From positions 1 through 64,000 of the forward strand of contig MCFE01000193.1 in the NCBI GenBank assembly GCA_002104905.1: a stretch of DNA of 64,000 nt. Reading direction: 5' to 3'. Under the pieces are notes generated by a model. The model worked only from the letters and a program-made list of their open reading frames with translations. It had not been told where the DNA came from and ran no database searches. This document shows, in pieces, positions 2,596 to 43,030 of this stretch; position 1 is the first letter of the stretch, and each line of letters begins with the position of its first letter. This stretch comes from Basidiobolus meristosporus CBS 931.73 (Eukaryota; Fungi; Basidiobolomycota). The position numbers and the translations under genes are program-made.

Positions 2596-2823
2596 CTATG
2601 GGGAGTTGAAATTTTCTATACACACAAGAGTGCGTACACAATCTTTATTTTGAATTGTTAAATTCCTTTTGGATAGTGTGCCCTTCCAACGGCTCGCCTC
2701 TTCATGGATCTGGGATGCCTTCTCTAGTGACTCTTGATGCTTCTCGGCTGAGACATTGGGATTGTGAGCGGCAGCCTTGAGTTTTCTTTCGACGTTTCTG
2801 GGGTTATTTCCTTCATATTCCAT
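2596..2823 (-). pseudogene. con-6: Con-6-like copy 1, frameshifted
   Basis: 7-bp deletion (GCGTACA) relative to copy 2 shifts the frame past the ancestral TAA at 2645-2647. The conserved NPGNVEGG is changed to NPRNVERK. Confidence 0.7.
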
Positions 2824-3243
2824 GGTGCTTTTGATTATTCGAAAAACGTTATGTGGAAGAAGGAGACTTTGACTGGCTTATATACACAAACCATACCCCC
2901 TACGGTATTACTGTTCTTAGCACGTACTGAGTTTGTAACTCACTGAATTTTAAATGTGCAGTCAAACAAGTGGAGGATACTCGTAGTTTAATATCCCATG
3001 TCCCTAGAACCCCTTGGTTGCATATTAAGCAAGTGACTTTGGTATTTTATTGCTCTCTACTTGATTAAGACTCCCATTTCATGCACATCTTTTGCTTTGA
3101 CATAAATGATATAGTAATGGGATTTTAAGGTACACTCAATAGTGTGTCTTTGGCAAGCTTATAAACACGAGCCAAACTCCTTACAGCATCAGTGTCTGTG
3201 TTGGCCAACGATCTATGCTATAAAGATTGCGGCAACTGTGACA

Positions 3244-3271
3244 CGATCGATATTGACAGCGTAGATCGGGA
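3244..3271. promoter_or_regulatory. Bipartite GATC element upstream of Con-6 copy 1
   Basis: CGATCGAT-attgacagcgt-AGATCGGGA; counterpart upstream of every copy. Confidence 0.55.
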
Positions 3272-3712
3272 TAGCTTTGGGTGCGCAGTGTTGTACCTGA
3301 CCGGATTTGACTGAAATACGATGTTTGATCGAGGTTGGAAGTGCAATAAATAAGAATGAAGCGTGGCATACTAGCACAGTAGTCACCTTTTCTTCCTCTT
3401 CATTTCTTGTACATCTGAAGCTTTACTGCATGTGTATATGATATTTCTCAACATGATGATTTTATTTACTTGCAAGATATTCATATTCATTTTGTGCTTG
3501 GGTTCTTGCTTGGACACGCTTCATGATGAGACACTGAGATCTAGGAGGGCCACAAATCTCGAATTCTCGAAAGTCTCTCATGTTACAATTACTAGGTGGC
3601 CTAAGGACGAGTTAGGTAAGGTCTGCATGAATGAACAAGTACAAATCCACAAAATAGTTGGACTCCATACAATGGCAAAGTTAGCATCGTTAATCAGCAT
3701 ACGCATTAGTCT

Positions 3713-3898
3713 TTATTTTGAATCCTTGGATTCCTTCTGTATAGTTTGATCCTTTAATGGCTCGCCTGTACGCTCTTCATGGATCTTGGACGCCTTCTCT
3801 AGTGACTCCTGTTGCTTCTCGGCTGAGACGTTGGGATTGTGAGCGGCAGCCTTAAATCCTCCTTCAACGTTTCCGGGGTTCTTTCCTTCGTATTCCAT
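3713..3898 (-). CDS. con-6: Con-6-like conidiation/spore protein copy 2 (61 aa)
   Basis: KNPGNVEGGFKAAAHNPNVSAEKQQES matches the Con-6 pattern NPGNVxGGxKAxxxNPNVSxE. Confidence 0.85.
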   Translation of the reverse strand: MEYEGKNPGNVEGGFKAAAHNPNVSAEKQQESLEKASKIHEERTGEPLKDQTIQKESKDSK

Positions 3899-4016
3899 GG
3901 TGCTCTCGAGCTATTAGAGAAATGATCTGTGGAAGAAGGCACCTTTAACTGGCTTATATACGCGAGCCTTACCCCGTATGGCACCAGTGTCTGGTCATTG
4001 TCGACGACATTTCTGA

Positions 4017-4044
4017 CGATCGATCTATACCATATAGATCGCGA
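4017..4044. promoter_or_regulatory. Bipartite GATC element upstream of Con-6 copy 2
   Basis: CGATCGAT-ctataccatat-AGATCGCGA. Confidence 0.6.
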
Positions 4045-4601
4045 TGACTGCGGGATATTAGAATTAATAAATACACGATCGATGAGAAGATTATGCCAAG
4101 TACACAATCAATGATCAAGGTCAATAAGTGTCATGATCGATGAGATGACTATGCCAAATTAGCTAGGCTCTATTGATGACGCGCAAGTCTCATATAGGAT
4201 AGTGGCTAATCCAGTATTTCACACATGGCTCTGCTTAATTAGATTTGCATGAACTCCCATCGGTGATACCCAAGTCACATTGATACATATATGCCAAGGA
4301 ATACACTACCGAAGCCTTCACTTTCCAAGGTTGCATGAGCATCTGCATTAGACTTGTTCCATTGTGCCAGAAAGTGCAGTTTATTTTGTTATCAATTTGT
4401 TAAGTTTTTGATTTTGATCCTAATCTGTCACTGTGATCATGATGGAACAAGTACATTGTGTTTATGACCCACCAGACTCCAAATGTACGCTCGAACATGT
4501 GAAGTATACACGTAGTTATATACAGATGTACACGATAACAAGTCAAGATAAGTAACACGATAACCAAAGTTTCAAGGTACACTTGATAATGTGCCCGAAT
4601 T

Positions 4602-4778
4602 TTATTTTGATTCCTTTTCAATGGTCTGCCCTTCCAGCGGTTTGCCAGTACGCTCCTCATGGATCTGCGATGCCTTCTCTAGTGATTCTTGTTGCTTCTC
4701 GGCTGAGACGTTGGGATTGTGAGCGGCGGCCTTGAGTCCTCCTTCAACGTTTCCTGGGTTCTTTCCTTCGTATTCCAT
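4602..4778 (-). CDS. con-6: Con-6-like copy 3 (58 aa; below ORF-track cutoff)
   Basis: Manual translation MEYEGKNPGNVEGGLKAAAHNPNVSAEKQQESLEKASQIHEERTGKPLEGQTIEKESK-stop; in-frame 9-bp C-terminal deletion. Confidence 0.85.
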   Translation of the reverse strand: MEYEGKNPGNVEGGLKAAAHNPNVSAEKQQESLEKASQIHEERTGKPLEGQTIEKESK

Positions 4779-4925
4779 GATGCTTTTGGGTTATTTGAGA
4801 AATGATATGTGGGAGAAGGAGCCTCTGGTGCGCTTATATACTCAACCTATTTTCTCAGTGACATCATGCATAATGAGCGCTTCATGACTAGCTTCAGTCA
4901 ATGCCATTATGCTATCTGTCTGAGG

Positions 4926-4944
4926 CGATCGATATCTACAGATC
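4926..4944. promoter_or_regulatory. Bipartite GATC element upstream of Con-6 copy 3 (short spacer)
   Basis: CGATCGAT-atctac-AGATC. Confidence 0.55.
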
Positions 4945-5325
4945 AGCATTGCTTTGGCATATTCGACCGTTTACGCAGCAGTTTGTCTGATACACGATGT
5001 ATGATCGAGGTTGATAAGTGAATTAAGTACTGTTGATATCTATGCACTAACGGTACATTATCCAGTGTTTCCTCCGCTTCATTTCGCATCTTTGAGCTTG
5101 GATCCTCGCTCGGACACACTTAATAATGAGATCCCAAGGTATAGGAGGACTTCAAATCTCGAAATCTAAATGCCTGACCCGCTACAAATGTGAGTTGACC
5201 TACAGATGAATCGGGTAAAGCAGCCTCCATGAACCAACGCGTACAAATTCATCATGCAGTTGATTTTCATATAATAGCAAGACTAACATCACTAATCAGC
5301 GCACACGTTAAAACGGGCAATGTTT

Positions 5326-5511
5326 TTATTTTGAATCCTTGGATTCCTTTTCAATGGTCTGCCCTTCCAGTGGTTTGCCAGTACGCTCCTCGTGGATCTG
5401 GGACGCCTTCTCTAGTGATTCTTGTTGCTTCTCGGCTGAGACGTTGGGATTGTGAGCTGCAGCCTTGAATCCTCCTTCAACGTTTCCGGGGTTCTTTCCT
5501 TCGTACTCCAT
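5326..5511 (-). CDS. con-6: Con-6-like copy 4 (61 aa)
   Basis: Same Con-6 motif, intact ORF. Confidence 0.85.
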   Translation of the reverse strand: MEYEGKNPGNVEGGFKAAAHNPNVSAEKQQESLEKASQIHEERTGKPLEGQTIEKESKDSK

Positions 5512-5661
5512 GGTGTTTCTGTGTTGCCAGATAGATCTTCTATGGAAGAAGAAACCTTATGGGAGCTTATATACTCGACCTATACGTCCACAGTGACATC
5601 ATGAATGGTGAGCCCTTCGAGTCAAGTTTCATTTAATGGCGTTATACTATCGACTTCAGAA

Positions 5662-5689
5662 TGATCGATGTTCAACGCGTAGATCGGGA
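5662..5689. promoter_or_regulatory. Bipartite GATC element upstream of Con-6 copy 4
   Basis: TGATCGAT-gttcaacgcgt-AGATCGGGA. Confidence 0.6.
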
Positions 5690-6261
5690 AAACGCTGGCA
5701 TTGTTTACATTGAAGCTCGGGCGATTGGATTTGGTTGATAGACACTGTATGATTGAAGCGCCCATCGAGGAGATCGATGTATAAGAATGCGACACTTGGC
5801 CCCAATCACGGAAACGACCGCTCTATCCATTTCTTCAAGCTAATCTAAAGCAACTCGCGGCAACACTATATATCGGTCCAAATATGCACTGGATGCACTT
5901 ATCGGTTTTTCAAAACCACAACCCCTGCTGTGTACAATACTGCTCATCATCGGACTAGATTCATGTTTGGAGGTACTGAGTGAACATTCCCTATTGTAGG
6001 CGCATTCTATGGTGATGTCACGAAGTTCGATAAAATCCCGGTCAAGTTGCAACTATTACATTATCGAGGAATCGAGCAAACTAATGAACATTTATGTTTC
6101 CAGAACATCAGATCCAACTGGTACTCGATCGATAAACAGATTCATCTAGTAAAGTCAGCTGGAGCGGCAATAGACAACACTCCACTCTTATCACAATTTT
6201 ATATACGGCCTTGGTCATGGTAACCGAGATTTCAAAGTACACAGTAAAGTGTGTCTGTTCT

Positions 6262-6447
6262 TTATTTTGAATCCTTGGATTCCTTTTCAATGGTTTGCCC
6301 TTCCAGTGGTTTGCCAGTACGCTCCTCATGGATCTGCGATGCCTTCTCTAGCGATTCTTGTTGCTTCTCGGCTGAGACGTTGGGATTGTGAGCGGCGGCC
6401 TTGAGTCCTCCTTCAACGTTTCCTGGGTTCTTTCCTTCGTATTCCAT
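6262..6447 (-). CDS. con-6: Con-6-like copy 5 (61 aa)
   Basis: Same Con-6 motif, intact ORF. Confidence 0.85.
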   Translation of the reverse strand: MEYEGKNPGNVEGGLKAAAHNPNVSAEKQQESLEKASQIHEERTGKPLEGQTIEKESKDSK

Positions 6448-6597
6448 GGTGCTTTTGAGTTATTCGAGAAATGATATGTGGAAGAAGGAGCCTCTGGTGC
6501 GGTTAAATACTCGACCTATGTTTCCAGTGACATCATGAATGGTGACCAGCATTGCGTGTTTAGTTTCAGCTAATAGCATCATGGTAACGACAGGAGG

Positions 6598-6625
6598 CGA
6601 TCGATTCCCATGGTACAGATCGGGA
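6598..6625. promoter_or_regulatory. Bipartite GATC element upstream of Con-6 copy 5
   Basis: CGATCGAT-tcccatggtac-AGATCGGGA. Confidence 0.6.
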
Positions 6626-8366
6626 TAACGTTGGAAATATCCCATCTTTGTCATCGTTTACGCAGCAGTTTGTCTGATCGGATCGGACTGATACATAGTG
6701 TATGATTGAGGCCACCAAGTGCAATAATCAAAAGCAATGAATGAGAATGCAGCATCTGACCCCAAGTGCGGTTGACATCTACACCCTAGTTATGTTCTAT
6801 TCATTTCCCGATGTTGAGCATGCCTCGGAAATGCTATTCTATATCCACCTTTACTTTGGCTGTATGCCTAGTGCATTGAATATTGCTTATATGCATACTC
6901 TAAGCTTTCTATTTACACGATACACGCTTGAACACACTTGATGGCGAGATCCTTGGGTTTGAGAAGACCACATACCTCAGACCCTAGAGGTCTGTCCCGT
7001 TACCAATGCCATGTGAGCTATAGATGAATCAGGTATGGCAGCCCGCATGAATGAACACGTACTATTGATATGGCTGATATTTTTGTTCAACACGTGATCA
7101 ACAGCAATATTGCATAGCAACATGATTACAGTGCCAAAGTCAGATGATAGAGTTGGTGTGCAGCTGAATTACATTCTGATTTCATCATCTCTGACAAATC
7201 TCTGTGAGCCATATACCTCTTAACCGCAGTAGTATACACCTTCACCATGGGCCCAAGCTGTATTTGATACTATTTACATAGCATGGTAAAGATGCCCTTG
7301 ATACCCAATCATTCCAGTGGAAGTGTTATTCCAGCCCAAACTCTTAACATAACCTATGTTGGTGGTCATTGGGAAGTAACTAGAGCAATGAGTGACAACA
7401 AAGGAATTTCTGCTTTGGTAGATTTAGAAAAGCATTATGGAGAGATTTCAAAGGAATCATGCAGGGATCTTCTGAGCAATGAGCCTTTCCATCATTTCAA
7501 CATTTCTACAATCCTCAGCATAAAAGCAAGCATATCGCCCAGTCAAGACAATTGAGCAATTAGAGCAATTAGGGCAATTAGGGCAATACTACTAATTTCT
7601 GTTGATTGTATGTTGAGATTGGGATCCATGACATTTCTGAATACCAAGGAATTACTAAGCGTATACCTTTTCAATGTGTCAGATGCATCCACTGGAGCAC
7701 CCTATGCTCCTCAAAACTTCGTATACATATAATAGGCTCTTTCATAATTCCAGCTATATCTTCATTGACACAGCAAATCATATCTTATTCTTTTACCTCG
7801 CCACTAGATATCAAAGAGCTCTTAGGTTTACATGAAAATACTGCTTTACTTGCGTAAGGTGGTGCAGTATAGCTCTGTCATCTAGGTTCTATTAATCTAT
7901 GCCAAGAAGTGGATTCAGTGGCGTAGTTTTTGATGATATTAACAAACCAGACTTAGTATAGATCCAATTCATACAAGTAGATCGAAATCCAGGGCCATAT
8001 CGTGTTCAGGATGAAAAATCCCCTTCTGTGCGCCTGTACATTCCCATTGTGTAGTTAAACCCAGCCTGCAGTCGAATAAAAACACAATAGACTGGGAATT
8101 ATAAGAATAAGCGAGATGGAGCGTATCCTGTGGGGCTAAACGAGATCAGGATGGTTGATCAAAGTCCCATATACTTACACCAGATAACCTTAATTTTTTG
8201 TGACAATAATATTTCTCACACTCGAACTGTCAGTGTGACTTGTGGCGAGGTGGTAATACCTTTATCCATGTTGTGGAGAAACTAATATGCACCATGGTAC
8301 AAGCACTCGAAGTATAAAGGAGGTTGAGGGTGCATCCACCAAAGGCAAACCAAGGTTATACTCACT

Positions 8367-13048: not shown

Positions 13049-13847
13049 AGCTGCCAGCATCTGCGCCAAGTCGGCGAGACTTTTATATTGCTTCGAGCGG
13101 ATAATTCTTGGTCAACCACGCCAACCACAGTGCCCAGCCAATCCACCAAAATATCGATCTCATACATGCCCAATCTATGTTGCCTTCGATGGGAAGCTCA
13201 TCCCAACCACGGTCTCGTTAGCCCAGGACTGACAAATATGGGCGATAGCTTGGTGGTTCCCATCTTTAGTATTTCCCCAGATTCCTAATTCAGTCTGGTC
13301 GGACACCATAAACAGGAATAGAATCTGGTGGATGGTCGGCTATTCGAGTCTGTTTAGATATGTACCTAAGTTAATTAGGAGAGTCCAATGGTTGTTTAGG
13401 TAGTGTGACATGCCCAATTTGCTCATTCGTTGAATTTTGCCGTCCCCACTCGTCATGGCCAATTTTCTGCACCTCACCGGCGTACTTCCATCTTCTGTAT
13501 GACTTTCGCAATGGTAGGAGACGAGCTTGGATGTGAGTGCAACGTTCGTCGATGGCACAGTTCGATTGGGATTGTTGAGCACCAGGCAAGAATTCTTGCT
13601 GAGACCTGGGACACACTTTTGCAAAGGATGCACTTTATTAAACAAGAGATCCAATAGGATGATTGTTATTTGTTTTGATTTTCATCCAGATTTCTGAACG
13701 ATAGTATCAAGTGAATTTCTACTCATGATTGCCTTTAACTGCCCGTTTGAACACTCTATCGACACGTACACTTTCTGACCCGGCTTTGGAGATCCCCCGC
13801 AATTCACCAACCACAACTTTTAAAGCATATTCGTCTGACTTGATATC

Positions 13848-23193: not shown

Positions 23194-26100
23194 TGTTGTA
23201 AAAATTTGTAATTCCACCTCAATATTCACCTAACTTAGTCACTTAGATCATTACATTCAAATCCTAGAGAATACTGACCAAATTCCTTGTTGGGATTTAC
23301 TCAGAATATTCTCACCAAATTACCAGGTACCCAGAACATGAAAATTCTCAAAGTTGTCCAAACAGCTCCAAGCTTTGCACACATGTTCTTGGGACCTTCC
23401 TTAGCCCATTCTAGGTGCTCTTTATGCCAAGATCATGTAAAAGTATAAATACTACTTTTACATTCAATAAATCATTAAGTGAAAACCACATTATCTACTT
23501 GTTCTCCCAATCACTTCCAATATCTTCAAGACTCTTACAACAGGTTTTGAGCCCTGAGCTGTCACTCTGTGCAATGTCTACTACTGCTATTACTGGAATT
23601 TTTCCCTCTGCTGAAAAGTTGGATGGAACTAACTACCAAGTGTGGAAGGTGAAGATGAAGATGCGGCTACAAGAAAGATGCCTTTGGGACATTGTCATGG
23701 GAAAAGAATGATCTCCTAAAAACATGGAAGAGGAAGCCTTAAAGTGCCAGAAAATAGAACAAAGTGCCTTTAACTGCGTTTGCCTTAATGTCAAAGACAA
23801 ATTGCTAATTCAATGGTCAAGAGCAAAAATCACAAAGAATGCCTGGAAGGCATTAGTTGACATAAACCAGTAATGTTCAGCTGCTAAGAAAATGTATCTT
23901 AGACAAAAATATCATACTATAAAGATGCTGCCACAAGAAGAAATGAAAAATCTAATTAACAGAATACCCTGCTGGTGGATGTGATGGAATCTATAGGTAT
24001 AGCAACCACTGATGAAGATGTGATAGTCACCATCCTGAATAGCCCAACAGACAGGTTTCAGGGCCTTGTATCAGCCCTAGAGTCCAGAACCAAAGATTTG
24101 ACCCTAAATTATGCATATGGAAGGCTCCTGGATGAAGAGTTAAGAAAATCAAGCACCAACCAGAAGGAAGAAGAAAATGCCTTAATAATAAATGATTACC
24201 ATCAAAGGAGAAACCCAGGACCTTTAAAGGCAATAACAACCTGTTTTGCAACTACTGCAAAAGGAAAGGACACATATCAGACTGGTGCTTCAAAAAGAGA
24301 TATAATCAGCAGAAAAAGCCTAAATATGGAAACGCTGCAACAACTGAAGATAGACTATTCATGTCTGGACTAAATATGACCACAAACAATAATTCTCAGA
24401 TGTGGTATATTGACTCTGGAGCATTTCAACTCTTTACACACCAAGAAGAACTTCTTAGCCAATATCAAGAAATTCCAATTGAGAAAGTTTTCATGGGTGA
24501 CAATAGAACACATGATGCAGTGGGAGAAGGAACTATCCAAGTAAACCTTAGAAGCAGCAAAGGAAGCTATACACTGACCTTTAAAGAAGTACACTATGTA
24601 CCAGAAGTAGCCAGGAACCTAGTATCTTTAAACAGGGCCACTGCAGAAGGACTCAATTTCAGCTTTGACAATTCTGGATACAGGATCACTGATCAATATG
24701 GTGCCCATATTGCTTTTGGTATCAGGTATCAGAATCTATGCAGGTTGACTCATATTCCATCATATTTGGAAGCCAATATAAGTAACATAAATGAAGAAAT
24801 GCCAAAGCTTTGGCACAGAAGATTTGGGCACATCAATTTTGATTATTTGCGCATAATGATCAAAGATCAGCTAATTTCTGGAGTGAAAATTGCTCCCCTA
24901 GCTAATTTGGAGCACTGTGAAGCCTGCATATATGGGAAACAGGCCAGACAACTGCTCAAGAGCTCTGGGTGAATAAAAACTAAGAAAAACCTAGATCTAA
25001 TTCACTCAGATCTGTGTGGACCTATGCAAAATTTATCCTTAGGCGGGATGAAGTATTTAACCACTTTTATTGATGATTATACAAGATACACATGGGTCTA
25101 CTTCATGGAGAGAAAGGAAGAAGCTCTGTCTAAGTTCAGGGAGTTTAAAGCCATGGTGGAGAGAGAAACTGGTGAAAAAATCAAGAAAATATGCTCTGAC
25201 AATGGTGGAGAATATACCTCAAAACTCTTCATCCACTTCTGCAAAATTCATGGGATAAGTCAAGAGACTACCATACAATACTCCCCACAGCAAAATGGAG
25301 TAGCAGAACATGCTAACAGATCAATAATTGATATGGCAAGATCTATGATCCATGATCAAAAATTATCCTATGATTTTTGGGCGGAATCAGTTGCCACTGC
25401 TGTATATCTTAAAAATAGGAGTTATAACAGAATACTTTGTGATTCTACTCCTTTTGAAGCATGGTATGGATACAGACCAAGTGCAGAACATCAAAGAATA
25501 TTTGGGTGTACAGCATATGCCAAAAAACTGGCCGGAAATCAGTCAAAATTTGAGCCAAAAAGTGTAAAATGCATATTATTGGGCTACTGCAATGAGAGTA
25601 AGGCATACAGACTCTACAATACCAAAGCAAAGAAGCTGATCAAGTCCAGGGATGTGTTGTTTGATGAAAATTCAAAATTTTCACAAAAAATGACATCAGA
25701 TGATGACAAAAGTTTGATCTCAAGTCCACCAATTGTCAGGATTGAATCAGAGCAAGACAATGAAGATTTTTTCACTCCAGAGGACTCTACAACTGTGGTT
25801 CAGCCAGAATCAGTGCCCAGGAATATCCCAGAAGTGATCATTCCAGTATCAAATTCCTGGAGATCCAATTGGACAAGAAATAGCCCAAATTACTATATCA
25901 ATGAGGGTACAAACTTAGCTTATATTGAAAATTCTCAAAGTTGTCCAAACAGCCCCAAACTTTGCACACATGCTCTTGGGACCTTTCTTAGCCTATTCTA
26001 CATGTTTATAATCCCAAGACCATGTAAAAGTATAAATACTACTTTCACATTCAATAAATCATTAAGTGAAGACAACATAATCTACTCTCCTCCTAGTCAC

Positions 26101-29100
26101 TTCCAATATCTTCAAGACTCTTACAACAGGGTATGAGCCCCAAGCTGTCACTCTCTGCAATATCTACTACTCATACTACTGGAATTTTCCCTCTGCTGAA
26201 AAGTGGGATGGATCTAACTACCAAGTGTGGAAGGTGAAGATGATGATGCTGCTATAAGAAAGAGGCCTTTGGGATATTGTCATTGGAGAAGAATGCCGTC
26301 CTAAAAACATGGGAGAGGAAGCCCTCAAGTACCAGAAGAAAGAGCAAAGTGCCTTTAACTGCATTTGCCTTAATGTTAAGGACAAATTGCAAGTTCAATG
26401 CTCAAGAGCAAAAACAGCAAAGAATGCCTGGAAGGCATTAGAATACACCTACCAGTCAGGTTCAGCTGATAAGAAAATGTATCTGAGACAAAAATTCTTT
26501 GCTACAAAGATGCTGCCAGGAGAAGAAATGAAAAATCTAATTAACAGAATTACCCTGCTGGTAGATGAGATGGAATCTGTGGGCGTACCAACTACTGACA
26601 AGGATGCAATAGTTACCATCCTGAATAGCATGACAGACAAGTTTCCAGGCCTTGTATCAGCCCTGGAGTCCAGACCTGAAGATTTGACCTTAAATTATAT
26701 ATATGGTAGGCTCCTGGATGAAAAATTAAGAAAATGCTTTAATAAGCAATGGTAACCAGCAAAGGAGGTACCCAAAACCCTACAAAGGCAACAGCAACCT
26801 GTTTTGCATCTACTGCAAAAGGAAAGGACACACATCAGACCAGTACTTCAAAAAGAAAGATAGTCAGCAGAAAAAGCCTGAATATGGAAATGCTGCAACA
26901 AGTGAAGATAGACTATTCATATCTGCACTAAATATGACCACAAACAAGAATTCTCAGAAGTGGTATATTTACTCTGGAGCATCTCAACACTTTACACACC
27001 AAAAAGAACTTTTTACCCAATATCAAGAAATTCCAATCAAGAAGGTTTTCATGGGTGACAATAGAACACTTGATGCCGTGAAGAAGGAACTATCCAAGTA
27101 AGCCTAAGAGGCAGTAAAGAAAGCCATACATTGACCTTTAAAGAAGTACTCTATGTACCAGAAATAGCCAAGAACCTAGTAACTGTAAGCAAGGCCACTG
27201 CAGAAGGACTCAGCTTCAGCTTTGACATTTCTGGATGCAAGATCACTGATCAAAATGGTCCACATATTGCTTTGGGTATCAGAGATCAGTACCTATACAA
27301 GTTGACTTATATTACATCATATTTGGAAGCCAATATAAGTAACTTAAGCAAAGAAACACCAATGCTTTGGCACAGGAGATTTGGGCACAACAATTTTGAT
27401 TATTTGCGTAAAATGATCAAAGATCAGCTAATTTCTGGAGTAAAAACTGATCCCCCAGCTGATTTGGAGCACTGTGAAGCCTGCATATATGTGAAACAAG
27501 TCAGACAACCATGCAGGAGCTCTGGGTTAGTCAAAACTAAGAAAAAATTAAGTCCAGTTCACTCAAATCTGTGCAGACCTATGCAAAATTTATCCTTAGG
27601 TGGGATGAAATATTTGATCACCTTTATTGATAATTATACAAGATACACATGGGTCTACTTCATGGAGAGAAAGGAAGAAGATCTGTCTAGTTCAGGGAGC
27701 TTAAACTATGGTGGAGAGAGAAACTAGTGAAAAAAGCAAGAAAATGCACTCTGACAATGGTAGAGAATATACCTCAGAACTCTTCATCCACTTCTGCAAA
27801 ATTCATGGGATAAAGCAAGAGACTACTGTACCATACTCCCCACTGCCAAATGGAGTAGCAGAATGTACTAACAGTTCAATAATTGATATGGCAAGATCCA
27901 TGATCCATGATCAAAATGTATCCTACAATTTTTGGGTGGAATCAGCTGCCACTGCTGTACATCTTAAAAATAGGAGTTATTACAGAGCAAAACAATGACA
28001 ATTTTTTCGCTCCAGAGGACTCTACAACTGTGGCTCAGCCTGAGGCAGTGCCTAGGAATATCCCAGAAGTGATCATTCCAGTATCAAAAGCCTGGAGATC
28101 CAATTGGACAAGAAATAGCCCAAATTACTATATCAAATAGGGTACAAACTTAGCTTATACCTATTCAGTCCATATTGATCCACCCCAGACTGCAAAAGAG
28201 GCCCTAAATAGCCCTCAGACAAAGCTTTGGAGATCTGCAATGACTGAGGAATATCAGGCCCTGATGGAAAATCAAACTTGGGACTTAGTCAAATTACCAA
28301 TCAACCAAAAATCAATTGGATGCAGATGGGTCTTCAATACAAAATACAAGGCTAATGGTACAGTTGAAAAATAAAAAGCAAGACTTGTGGCCAAAGGATA
28401 CTCTCAAACTAAAGTACTTGACTATACTGAGACCTTTGCATTGGTAGCCAAGTTTCATTCTATCAGATTAATATTGGCTATTGCAGCCAAATATATGTTT
28501 TTTATAAATCAATTGGATGTAAAAACAGCATTTATGAATGGAGAACTTAATGAGGATGTGTATATGAACCAGCCTGATGGATTTGCTGACCAAGACAACT
28601 TCCACTTGGTATGCAAGCTTAAAAAATCACTATATGGCCTCAAAAGCCAAGAGCCTGGAATTGCAAGATAGATTCTTATTTTGGAATCTTTGAGTGTCAA
28701 ACACAGTATTGCTGACTATAGCATATACTATGAGCCAGATAAAGCAAATCAAGTTCTATTAGCTCTATATGTGGATGACTTATTTTAACTGCCAATAACC
28801 TAGTAACATTGGAAGAGACTAAATCCAGCCTATCTAAGGAGTTCAGGATGTCCAATCTAGGAGAACTCAGTTACTACTTATGGATTACGCTCTCCATAGA
28901 CAGAAGTACCCAGACTATCACCCTTGGCCAGTCCAAGTATATTCAAGATATACTAAAGAAGTACCAAATGGAAGACTGTAAACCGGCAGCAACCCCAATG
29001 GAGACAAACCTAAATTTGGTCAAAACTCAATCAAATTAAGAGAGCTTGGTGCCATCTGAAAGCCCTGACTCTCCTTATCAATCTATGGCTGGCAGTCTGA

Positions 29101-38015: not shown

Positions 38016-39155
38016 TTACGGAGCATGGGGAGTCACCGTAGTACCATTGCTGGTTGTCACTTGCAAGGGGATCGCGGGCAAGTACCTGATACCATTTGGT
38101 GGCAGAGTGGGGTGCGGCCTGTATTGCTCAAGGAATTTTTCCACAGAGCCAAATAGTTGGCGAACCATAGGGTTCTGGGTAAGTTCCTTGGGAGGGTCGG
38201 AGAACAAGAAAAGGTGCAATAGCGCGATAAAGTCTTGCTTCTTTATCTTGCGAACGTTATTGGGGCTTGTCCTTTTTGTGTTCAATATGACGGCGGGGGA
38301 CCTTTTGAAGAGGGCGTACACTTGGTCGGCAGTCACCCGTTGTCAATAACAAGTTTTTGCTTCTTCCAAGACGTATTGTAGTTCTCCCGTAGAAACTGTG
38401 GCGCAATCAAGGCACTTTTGTACTTGCCTCATGGTTTCTACAGAATCCGCGGCGGTTTCTTTGGCTTCTTAGAGTTGAACTTTGTACTGATTCCTGAGTT
38501 GTCCTATGGTAAACCACTGTAATAGTTGTAACACAGCAACTTGGTGGATTGCATGGGTTAACTGGCCGGTGTATTTAATCCGTTTGCATATCTTCTCTAA
38601 GATGGTTACTTCTTGGAAATGTGGTTTGAGATGTTTGCGAATTTCTTGGAGGAGTCCTTTGATTGGGAGTTCTACTTCTGGTGCTCTTGCAGCTTGTACC
38701 AGGTCTGCGTATACCTCAACAACCGTGGTACCTATTAATGGCAAGTATGCAACAAAACAGGGGGGCTCTCAAGGTCTTGTGAGGGCGCGACAGTTGATTC
38801 CTTGTGTCTTCTGTCTAACTGTGTCCAGTATGGATACGGGAATCAGCGCGGCGTCCTTCTCCTTAATGATCAAGGAACCTCCTCTTAGGTGGTACACGGT
38901 CTTCTTGGGTAGTATCTCCATGCTTTGTATAGGCGTGGGTAACTTGTCTCGTCCCTCTCTGATTGTGTCTTGTATTAGCGTGACTGCTCCAGCAAACAAC
39001 TCTTCATAGGTGGCTCTTGTTGTATGTAACGCTTGTACCATATCTCTTAACACTTGCAGGTTGGTTTTGTTTTTGATATCATCTTGGTTCTTGCTAGTGG
39101 GAGGGGTATTGCCAGTTTTGGGTGAACTGTTTCCTTTGGCGCTTTCCATATGCAT
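38016..39155 (-). pseudogene. Gypsy C extra ORF (379 aa from first ATG), unknown function
   Basis: Three ORF-track pieces (38769-39179, 38469-38744, 38016-38336) are in one frame, separated by single TGA, TAA and TGA stops with no frameshift. Confidence 0.75.
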
Positions 39156-39284
39156 TCTTTTGTTCTCCCCTTTGGGCAAACTCCCTCGCGCATATTATTT
39201 GTACCTATATTGACTAAAATCTCCTCTAATAAACTTCAAATGTATCCCTTGTCTTCCTCTATCCTTGTCCTGATATTTGTTTAA

Positions 39285-42200
39285 TCACACTTTGGTCTCA
39301 GTGATGATTGGTGGATCATCATGAAACGGTTTCAGATGGGCTGGCGCTACGTTGCTGATTGTCTTATTATTCAGGGTGATGGTGTACTTTGGTCCGTGGT
39401 CCAAACTGATAACGGTGCATGGGCCAATCCATCAGGGTGTAAATCATGGGCGGAACTTGAGGCCTGCAACGGTTTGGTTGTACCACACCTTATCGCCTGA
39501 TTTCCACTTTTGTCTTGTTAGTTTCTCATTTTTGGGTGGAGGGGGAAGGTGCTTGTTGACATTTTCGAATACTTTTATGTATAGGTGGGCAATACGGTGT
39601 ATCAACCTTTCTATATAGTCGTTATGTGTTGTCAGGGGGACACCTTCCATTGTCAAACCAGCTTCCTCCCGCCACTTGGGTCTTCGTCCATATAGGATTT
39701 CATATGGGGAGAAACCCGTCGTTTTATTTGGTGTGGTGTGCATTGCTAGGAGTGTCAGTGGGAGCAGCTTGGCCCATGATTGGGGAAGTTCCCAGTGAAG
39801 CTTCTCCAGTATGCGGCAGCACGTCTGGTTCATCCTCTTGGTTAATCCGTCAGTCTGGGGGTGATACGCGGCCGTGAAGACTTGTTTCACGCCCATCATT
39901 TTGCACAGGTGGGCCACGGTGTTGTTCAGGAAGGAACCACCATTGTTGGACAGGAGTATCTGAGGATATCTGTGTCGGCAGATGAGGTGTTCTAGAATGA
40001 ATTGGGCGGTTGTCTTCTGATCTTTATTGCAGACGGCTTGGGCTTCTACCCACTTTGAGAAATAATCGGTAGCAATTATTATGTATTGTTCTCCTTTCTT
40101 TGTTTTCATAAAGGGGCCAACAAAGTCAATCCCTACTTGGTGGAAGGGCAGGTCAACCGGTATTGGTGCGGTTGTCCCTATCTTCTGACTCCGGTTGAAT
40201 CTTTCGCAAGTGGTGCATCTTTGTAACGTATTTGTAACGTTGGTCATCATTTTTCGCCAATAGAACGTTTTTCTTAACATCTTATATGTTGTTAGGGGGT
40301 TAGCGTGTCCTAATGACATATGTCTTTCTTGTATGATTTCTTCACGGGCTGCTAGTGGGGGTACCTTGGCTCTGGACTGTCCTGGGAGGAACCATAGTTG
40401 ATTTTCTTGTACTTCGTACTGACACCATTTCCTTCAAAATTCTCTCTTCTGTTTGTTTGTAACGACATGTTTGGGATACCTCCCTTTCTTTTTAAAGCAG
40501 ATTACGTCCTCGTACTCATCACTGACACGTATTTGGCAAACGGGACAGCAACTGAGGAAGTCTGCGTCCTGGTGTTTCTTGCCAGCGCGGTGAATTATTT
40601 CAAAGTCGTATTGCTGTAGTTGTAGGGCCCAACGTGCTAGTTGGCTGGTAAAGTCTTTAGTTTTCATCAGCCAGACCAGTGCACTGTGGTCCGTTACTAT
40701 CGTGAATTGGCGACCATGTATGTATGTATGGAATTGTTTATTTGAATAAACAACAGCCAGACATTTTATCTTGGTAATGGGGTAGTGGCATTTGTGTTTG
40801 TTTAGCAAACAGCTCACGTAACCAATCGGGTGGAATTTGCCGGGTTGGTGGTATTGTCCCAGTACAGCGCCTATACCGGTGAGGCTTCCATCACAGTTAA
40901 TAAAAAGTCTTGCATCCCAATTGGGAAATCGTAACACTGGCGGTGACGTCAGGGAATGTTTCAGCTGATTGAATGCTCTCTTTTGAGGCTCCGACCATAC
41001 AAAACACTGGCCCTTTTGCATCAATTCATACAGGGGGGCTGCTATTGTCGCAAAGTTTTTGACAAAGCGGCGATAGTAGCCGGCTAATCCTAGGAATCCC
41101 AACACTGCATTAATGTCCTTTGGTGCAGGTGCATTTTGAACGGCTTTCAGGAGTGATGTAGATGGGTATATTCTATCTGCCGAGATCTTGTGGCCCAGGA
41201 ACAACAATTTTGTATACAGGAAATGGCACTTCTTGGGATGTAGTTTGAGTTGGTTCTTGAGGAGGGATGTCAGGATACGTTGCACATTGTGTATATGTTC
41301 TTCTACATCGGGGGAATATATCGTGATGTCTTCCAGATACACGAGGGCACATTCCCATTGTAGATTTCCTAGCACCTTGTCAATCATCCTTTGGAACGTA
41401 GCGGGGGCATTGCACAAGCCAAAGGGTAGTTGGTTCCATTTGTATAATCCAAGCAATGTTATAAAAGCGGTTTTGGGTTGATCTTCCGGGGCTACTTCTA
41501 CTTGCCAATACCTGGAGATTAAGTCAAGAGAGCTAAAATATTTAGCTCCAATTAATCTGTCCAAGAGGTCGTCTATTTGCGGTAGCGGATACACGTCCTT
41601 CCAGGTGATGGCATTCAATTTCCGGTAGTTGATGCAAAAGCGTTGCTTTCCGTCTTTCTTTGGGACTATCACTACGGGGGAGGCCCACGGAGACTGGCTC
41701 TCTGTAATGATGTCGTCTTTTAATAAAGTTTCAATCGTCTCTTTGATATAGTCTGTGTCAATTTTCAAATTCCTATAGGCTTTTTGCTTGATGGGGTATT
41801 TGTTGGCAAGGTGGATTTGGTGATATACCCCAGGTATATGACCAATTACTTGGTTCTTAGAGAATACTTGGGCAAGCGGACATATTCCTTCTAGGAATTT
41901 GTCTTGTAACGTAGGCGGTAGACCGGGGTCCACATCTGGTTTGGGGAGTTCTTCTTCTGGTTCTTTGTTTGGAGGTGGTCCTTGGTTGTTTCCGTCAACT
42001 TCCTCTAAGTTTAACAATGGCACTCCTCTAGGCAATGTCACCGTGTGTTGCCTGTTGTTAACCACTAAGCATTTCAGGCTTTGCGTTTCAAATTTCGGTG
42101 GTATCCATACTTTAGGGATCGAGATTCCTTCCAGTTGCTCAGATGCTTTTGCTGCAGTTATCATTCTTCCGCTTGTTGAATAAGCTATTGGTGTTTCTAA

Positions 42201-43030
42201 TGAGATCACCGTCTCACTGGCGGGTGGTATTTTTATCACCTTTTGTGTGATGATCGGAGACTGCGACGGTTTCATCTCTTTGATTGTCACACTGTTGCTA
42301 CGCGCCTTGCTCTCATTGGTGATATGAATCAGTGGGATACTCTTGGTATCCCACCTGAGTTCAGATGCACTGTAAAGTATATCCATCTTATGTTGGATAA
42401 ACCAACTCTTGCCAATGAGTAAGTCATTGGCTGCAACAGGTAGGACCACAACATCTTGGCGTATTATCAAGTTGCCTAGCCAAATAGGGCAATTAGGCAC
42501 CACACCTACCGTTGTATCCAGTTGGTCATTTGCTAGCCGTACTTGAATGGTGTTGTTGGGGACTATATTTAGTTTTAGACGTTTTGCTAATGACTCTGAC
42601 ATGATCAACGTAGAGGATCCTGTGTCAATAAGGGCAAGAATCTCCTTATTCTCTATACATACCTTTATGTATGTACCTTTATTCAGTTTTTGCAGGACCG
42701 TCTGGTTGACATGGAGGGTTGTTATCTCCTTCAATCCCTCTATCAGTTCCTTGACTAGAGCCGGGGCCAGTCCCAGTAAATTGGTTATTGGGAGGGTTGC
42801 CTTGGTTTGCTCTAGTACCTTCATTATGGGGAATAGGCCATGGGAAGACGTGCTAGCGTTCTTTGTTTGCTTTAACACTTCTTCCCAAGGTTCATTCCAT
42901 ACTTCTTCACCTAATTCCGCGCTCTTTCCTTTTGACAGAACCTCTACTACAGGTTCCTTTGCCTCCTCTCTAGAAGCATCATGTCAACGCTTCTTCTTCC
43001 GCACTTTGATTGTCCTGACCAGAGGGCTTA
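39285..43030 (-). pseudogene. Gypsy C pol (PR-RT-RH-IN), -1 frame relative to gag
   Basis: Single frame with four internal TGA stops. RT catalytic motif reads YLED instead of YLDD. Integrase has HHCC and VGIDFVGP. Confidence 0.9.

Follow-up and report, generated by a model that had tools for sequence, protein, structure and literature searches.

The window analysed here comprises positions 1 to 64,000 (64 kb, forward strand) of contig MCFE01000193.1 of Basidiobolus meristosporus CBS 931.73, and its subject is an array of five single-exon, minus-strand Con-6 (PF10346) genes at 2596–6447, with ATGs at 2823, 3898, 4778, 5511, and 6447. Each gene has upstream of it one copy of a bipartite element, two short GATC boxes separated by a spacer, which an earlier reading of the same DNA (hereafter the original prediction) proposed as a candidate light-response element (LRE) of the White Collar complex (WCC). 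The genes and their elements, all read on the minus strand, are as follows.

2596–2823, minus strand: Con-6 copy 1, 75 amino acids, degenerate (open reading frame and Pfam)
3244–3268, minus strand: bipartite element with an 11-nt spacer, 421 bp from the copy 1 ATG
3713–3898, minus strand: Con-6 copy 2, 61 amino acids (open reading frame and PF10346, E 3e-10)
4017–4041, minus strand: bipartite element of copy 2, sense GATCT-N11-ATCGATCG
4602–4778, minus strand: Con-6 copy 3, 58 amino acids, stop three codons early (open reading frame and Pfam)
4926–4945, minus strand: bipartite element of copy 3, with a 6-nt spacer
5326–5511, minus strand: Con-6 copy 4, 61 amino acids (open reading frame and protein word search)
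5662–5686, minus strand: bipartite element of copy 4
6262–6447, minus strand: Con-6 copy 5, 61 amino acids (open reading frame)
6598–6622, minus strand: bipartite element of copy 5

Three of the five open reading frames were scanned against Pfam, and all three exceed the Con-6 gathering score of 25 bits (copy 1, 28.4; copy 2, 40.1; copy 3, 41.3). Relatives for comparison were obtained by word search. The window proteins are 85–95% identical to Basidiobolus proteins (B. meristosporus CBS 931.73 and B. ranarum), and no other genus is present among the word-search matches; an exact-protein look-up with one window Con-6 copy matched no record, and a metagenome scan for more Con-6 loci returned 197 pattern matches, none of which was confirmed. 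Copy 1 carries substitutions in the Con-6 domain and a frameshift after approximately residue 42 that affects its C-terminal half. A closely related B. meristosporus array, L007 (MCFE01000600.1), is 97.8% identical to the window array, with five copies in the same order, and contains both the degenerate copy 1 and the 58-amino-acid form of copy 3. The frameshift and the early stop are therefore older than the split of the two sequences.

The pattern GATCGAT-N(4–13)-AGATC matches the 64-kb window exactly five times, on the plus strand with starts at 3245, 4018, 4927, 5663, and 6599; 0.04 matches are expected, and none of 100 dinucleotide-preserving shuffles reaches five. The spacer lengths and distances of the original prediction were reproduced: the spacer is 11 nt in four elements and 6 nt in the one at 4927, and, measured from the proximal edge, the ATGs at 3898, 4778, 5511, and 6447 are 119, 148, 151, and 151 bp away and the ATG at 2823 is 421 bp away. 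The short spacer of copy 3 is also found in L007. In gene-sense orientation the two half-sites form a direct repeat, GATCT-N13-CGATC in four copies with the gap reduced to N8 in copy 3. The GATC cores of the element are 19 bp apart (14 bp in copy 3 and 13 bp in B. ranarum), so that the earlier description of the spacing as roughly one helical turn had to be abandoned and any factor that reads the element must tolerate variable spacing. The hexamers GATCGA/TCGATC cluster in the same region, with 13 of the 25 window sites inside the 4.1-kb array (P = 7e-10). As the copies arose by tandem duplication, recurrence is to be expected and is no proof in itself.

A comparison of boxes with spacer, suggested earlier as a check, was run on an alignment of 12 diverged promoters, five from the window and seven from the paralogous B. 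meristosporus array L001. Third codon positions diverge by 9–35% within the array and by ~50% to B. ranarum (codon positions 1 and 2 differ by no more than 6% within the array), which makes the promoters of the paralogues informative on constraint. Changes in each column were counted as Fitch parsimony steps on a tree built from the remaining columns. Box columns show 0–1 steps, ten of the 11 spacer columns 3–5 steps and the remaining one a single step, against a background mean of 2.44; the spacer is thus more variable than its surroundings. Together the 12 box columns (5 + 7) require 8 steps versus a mean of 28.8, the lowest of 238 placements, and the spacer-minus-box contrast is the highest of the 238. 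Among 100,000 random draws of 12 columns, none was as low as 8 steps. Only four blocks in the whole promoter consist of successive columns with no more than one step: GATCT, ATCGATC, TGATG(YCA), and the TATA box. ATCGATC is the best-kept 7-mer, tied with the TATA box. Even copy 1, with its long branch of 0.40 substitutions per site, keeps the boxes, and alignment-free hexamer counts recover the same words as the alignment. The boxes are far better kept than the spacer and the neighbouring promoter, and the two are very likely, as judged from this pattern of constraint, a real conserved cis-element with a regulatory role. That a functional site exists here we consider highly probable.

The other B. 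meristosporus arrays contain the same element in different states of preservation. L001/L003 have exact GATCT-N11-ATCGATC with other spacers in five of seven copies, one further copy reads ATCAATC, and the first copy lacks the element. L008 keeps ATCGATC (box A) in four of five copies, three of which have a mutated GATCT half (box B: GATTT, GACCT, and TATCT), and its first copy is again without the element; box A thus appears to be the more constrained half. The statement that all five Con-6 genes have the element is accurate for the window and does not extend to the first-of-array copies elsewhere or to the three copies with a decayed box B, so the element is not universal to Con-6 genes. L007 has it in all five copies and differs from the window by four substitutions in the spacers and none in the boxes; this pair was rejected as a test of constraint, since a divergence of 2.2% predicts just 1.3 changes across 60 box positions.

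Several side observations concern the same arrays. In the L001 promoter at 13065, an extra CGATCATCA is inserted before box B (at about -150) and creates three closely packed CGATC words. Public gene models of L001, L003, L007, and L008 fuse adjacent 61-amino-acid Con-6 reading frames via long spurious introns into products of 87–150 amino acids; these arrays actually consist of 5–7 separate single-exon genes each. L008 has two truncated Con-6 copies of 34 and 53 amino acids.

The half-sites recur in a second species. None of the four B. ranarum Con-6 promoters (L002, L004, L005, and L006) has the N11 element; each has TCGATY-N7-TCGATT in antisense orientation near positions -200 to -225, plus a TCRATCGG box. 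Direct CGATY-N(3–15)-CGATY repeats are rare in the background (six in 110 kb, or 0.019 per 350 bp). Just two hexamers, ATCGAT and ACATCA, are common to the four B. ranarum promoters and also occur in 70% or more of 17 promoters of the meristosporus type. These comparisons suggest site turnover around a common half-site within the genus, with orientation and spacing changed, and such apparent retention of a half-site while orientation and spacing turn over is typical of real binding sites.

Between the bipartite element and the gene, and farther upstream, the promoters contain three additional features.

6501–6510, minus strand: TATA box, sense GTATWTAAS; also at 5565–5574, 4832–4841, 3952–3961, and 2876–2885, with a relic at 3157–3166
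6527–6535, minus strand: conserved TGATGYCA(Y) block between element and TATA box; also at 5593–5601 and 4858–4866, with a variant at 3978–3986
3326–3334, minus strand: distal third half-site, sense CCTCGATCA; homologous boxes at 5002–5010, 5750–5758, and 6703–6711

The TATA box is fixed at -62, and the element lies 46–96 bp upstream of it. The TGATGYCA(Y) block precedes the TATA box by 20–25 bp in almost every promoter, those of the element-less first-of-array copies among them, and looks from its sequence like a bZIP site (CRE or CYS-3-type ATGRYRYCAT). Its conservation is positional only, as counts ruled out the TGATGTCA block as a window-wide enriched word. The third half-site, TCRATC, lies ~80–110 bp farther upstream than the bipartite element; in the distal region of copy 2, GATCGATGAG is present at 4077–4086 and 4135–4144 in place of this box. 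A yeast PAC-like (Dot6/Tod6) site was one interpretation weighed for these copy 2 boxes and is not adopted here. The distal TGATYGARG box noted in the original prediction does occupy homologous positions in four promoters, but its count is not enriched (5 versus 2.8 expected), and it was dropped as a stand-alone motif. A TTACGCA word resembling a bZIP half-site was seen upstream of the element in some window promoters (4970–4978 and 6657–6665); the four B. ranarum promoters all have it at about -118, in the opposite orientation and downstream of the GATC boxes. A hairpin or cruciform with a 5-bp stem and a 15-nt loop, located upstream of the TATA box, was also considered for the element; it was discarded, being too weak and not transcribed.

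The element assigned to copy 1 has a different setting. It adjoins its own TATA-like box (3157–3166), which is followed by ~290 bp, a second TATA box (2876–2885), and the ATG. The start of the ~290 bp aligns with the 3′ flank of other Con-6 genes, and the proximal promoter of copy 1 is without an element. The same layout, at 2824–3268 in the window, is present in L007. This arrangement is probably what a sixth Con-6 copy left behind when it lost its coding region, and the element would be part of the promoter of that copy. The original assignment to copy 1 was right in the distance of 421 bp and in the extra sequence between element and gene, and probably wrong as to the gene that the element served.

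Known LREs provide a basis for comparison. The Neurospora frq LRE reads TCGATC-CGC-TCGATC, with a 3-nt gap (PMC3764193), and PMC7493669 gives the LRE consensus as GATNC--CGATN and, for frq, gaps of 3 and 11 nt as functional. The WCC core obtained by chromatin immunoprecipitation sequencing (ChIP-seq) in Neurospora is GATCGA with variable end bases (PMC3991626, PMC9225392). A 244-bp promoter fragment of Cryptococcus neoformans UVE1 with TCGATC-TTCATC-TCGATC is shifted by recombinant Bwc2 (PMC3764193), and a GATVC....CGATV motif lies upstream of Wco1-dependent blue-light genes in Ustilago maydis (PMC4831468). The window element, like these, has two GATN/(T)CGATC half-sites on one strand, and box A of all five copies contains GATCGA, in line with the GATC/GATCGA-type binding originally invoked for White Collar proteins. 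It shares with the frq LRE the direct orientation of two CGATC-type half-sites, a variable gap, the GATCGA core, and a position upstream of the core promoter, but its first half-site is GATCT rather than GATCC, its gap is 13 nt (8 nt in copy 3) rather than 3 or 11 nt, and its host is non-Dikarya, as the original prediction had it. Closest in wording is the UVE1 site, which reads GATCT-N6-CGATC with half-sites identical to those of the window element; it differs in its gap of 6 nt, in its gene, which encodes a DNA-repair endonuclease, and in being a single site not copied through an array. The U. maydis motif is likewise computational in origin, with two GAT parts at variable spacing, but was derived from known light-induced genes, whereas the window motif comes from paralogous promoters. 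The gene family also fits: con-6 is a classic light-induced target in Neurospora. As the original prediction stated, Neurospora con-6 is light-induced, in N. crassa being among the most light-induced transcripts, and A. nidulans conF and conJ are light-induced as well (PMC4169166).

The element is a good candidate LRE. Conservation, site grammar, and recurrence in a second species are observed here, and we infer the identity of the factor and the light signal. Our tentative proposal, to which we give slightly less than even credence, is that selection has retained the element as an upstream activating site for the Con-6 genes, one that the Basidiobolus WCC reads. The GATC half-sites would be bound by the GATA-type zinc fingers of this complex; light-induced LOV-LOV pairing of two WCCs, as in the model of PMC3991626, would lead to occupancy of both half-sites, and the whole array of small hydrophilic spore proteins would be switched on together. 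The distal third half-site and the TGATGYCA block may provide further input. Loose spacing of this kind, also seen in known LREs, agrees with a flexible factor. All main fungal lineages are reported to have white collar proteins (PMC7539958). If the Basidiobolus WC-1 has no zinc finger, WC-2 would contact the DNA by itself, as it does in basidiomycetes (PMC4831468). In B. ranarum, light/dark cycles are used to induce conidiophores, which are phototropic (PMC2528943). The literature searched contains no report of light induction of Basidiobolus Con-6 genes or of a factor binding to the element.

Several observations weigh against a WCC site. The strict consensus GATNC--CGATN has the same N in both halves, and GATCT...CGATC of the window agrees with it at 9 of 10 positions; only B. 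ranarum L004 (GATTC-N7-CGATT) matches perfectly, the three other promoters of that species being GATCC-N7-CGATT. The 13-nt gap is longer than the functionally verified 3–11 nt (the other gaps are 8 nt in copy 3 and 7 nt in B. ranarum), and the spacer of copy 3 is shorter by 5 bp, which alters the helical phase. In the B. meristosporus arrays other than those of the window and L007 (L001/L003 and L008), the first copy has no element, and three L008 copies have a mutated box B. The overlap of hexamers across species is modestly significant (0.29 expected, P = 0.03), and the different orientation and spacing in B. ranarum imply that the bipartite N11 architecture is lineage-specific.

A plausible if doubtful alternative is a real transcription-factor site for another protein: a GATC-preferring GATA-type finger of the SUB-1/NsdD kind that acts in development, or an unrelated reader of the ATCGAT palindrome, would drive expression during sporulation or stress with no direct induction by light. 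The evidence from conservation applies equally to such a site, as it does not name the factor, and the incomplete agreement with the strict LRE rule and the palindromic nature of the cross-species core ATCGAT both favour this explanation. Several yeast GATA-family fingers prefer AGATC. Con-6 genes, moreover, are primarily conidiation genes (PMC3991626). Against this stands the direct TCGATC repeat with a variable gap, which matches the sites of WCC and Bwc2 (PMC3764193, PMC7493669); in the literature searched, no other fungal factor has a direct TCGATC-repeat grammar.

The boxes could instead act on the state of DNA or chromatin, as symmetric targets of N6-adenine methylation (6mA) in VATB context or as boundaries between tandem units, but we regard this as quite unlikely. 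GATC and ATCGAT do fit the VATB ApT context that is the preferred site of 6mA in early-diverging fungi; in Phycomyces, for example, expressed genes are marked by 6mA clusters (PMC11258239). Such clusters, however, span many ApT sites near gene 5′ ends and would not need two precise words, and many other ApT sites of these promoters are not conserved. The element does recur once in every tandem unit, but there is no evidence of this type of insulator in fungi. Absence of any function is very improbable. All copies derive from one promoter, and the comparison of the window with L007, only 2.2% diverged, is powerless alone; the boxes might then be leftovers of recent duplication or gene conversion, or common words on which the aligner anchored. 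Conserved islands of 5 and 7 bp around a diverged spacer, however, are far shorter than conversion tracts and thus cannot be such tracts, the flanks align independently, and the composite boxes rank first of 238 on the tree-aware count. Their persistence on the long copy-1 branch, the same words from alignment-free hexamer counts, and the recurrence of the half-sites in another arrangement in B. ranarum complete the case, and this explanation is already largely refuted.

If the element is read by the WCC, a wider reading opens that we hold a little more loosely still: the half-site grammar of White Collar, in which a flexible gap separates direct TCGATC-type repeats, may have been conserved between Dikarya and Basidiobolus. 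In Basidiobolus, duplication may have spread it together with a Con-6 hydrophilin gene over more than 20 tandem units, and a single light signal would set the dose of a whole spore-protein array. The light biology of zygomycete-grade fungi (Phycomyces, Mucor, Pilobolus, and Basidiobolus) is classic. White Collar binding sites in the literature searched are from Dikarya only (Neurospora, Cordyceps, Cryptococcus, and Ustilago), with none for zygomycete-grade fungi. The element would then be the first WCC binding site to be defined outside Dikarya, in a fungus with phototropic, forcibly discharged conidia, and would be accompanied by naturally occurring variants in spacing (7, 8, and 13 nt) and by half-site losses. 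The more than 20 natural promoter variants differ in spacer sequence, have a shortened spacer or one lost box, or show, in a sister species, an inverted arrangement; they are ready probes and reporters that could show whether DNA recognition by the WCC is ancient and how strict its spacing rules are. Should light play no part, the element would still be the main control site of a large hydrophilin array under purifying selection.

The genes flanking the array encode a permease, a BBE-type FAD oxidase, a kinesin, and retroelements, none of which is relevant to light. The retroelement reading frames, with integrase and retroviral SH3-like domains, are located at 25024–26136 and 38016–42878 of the window.

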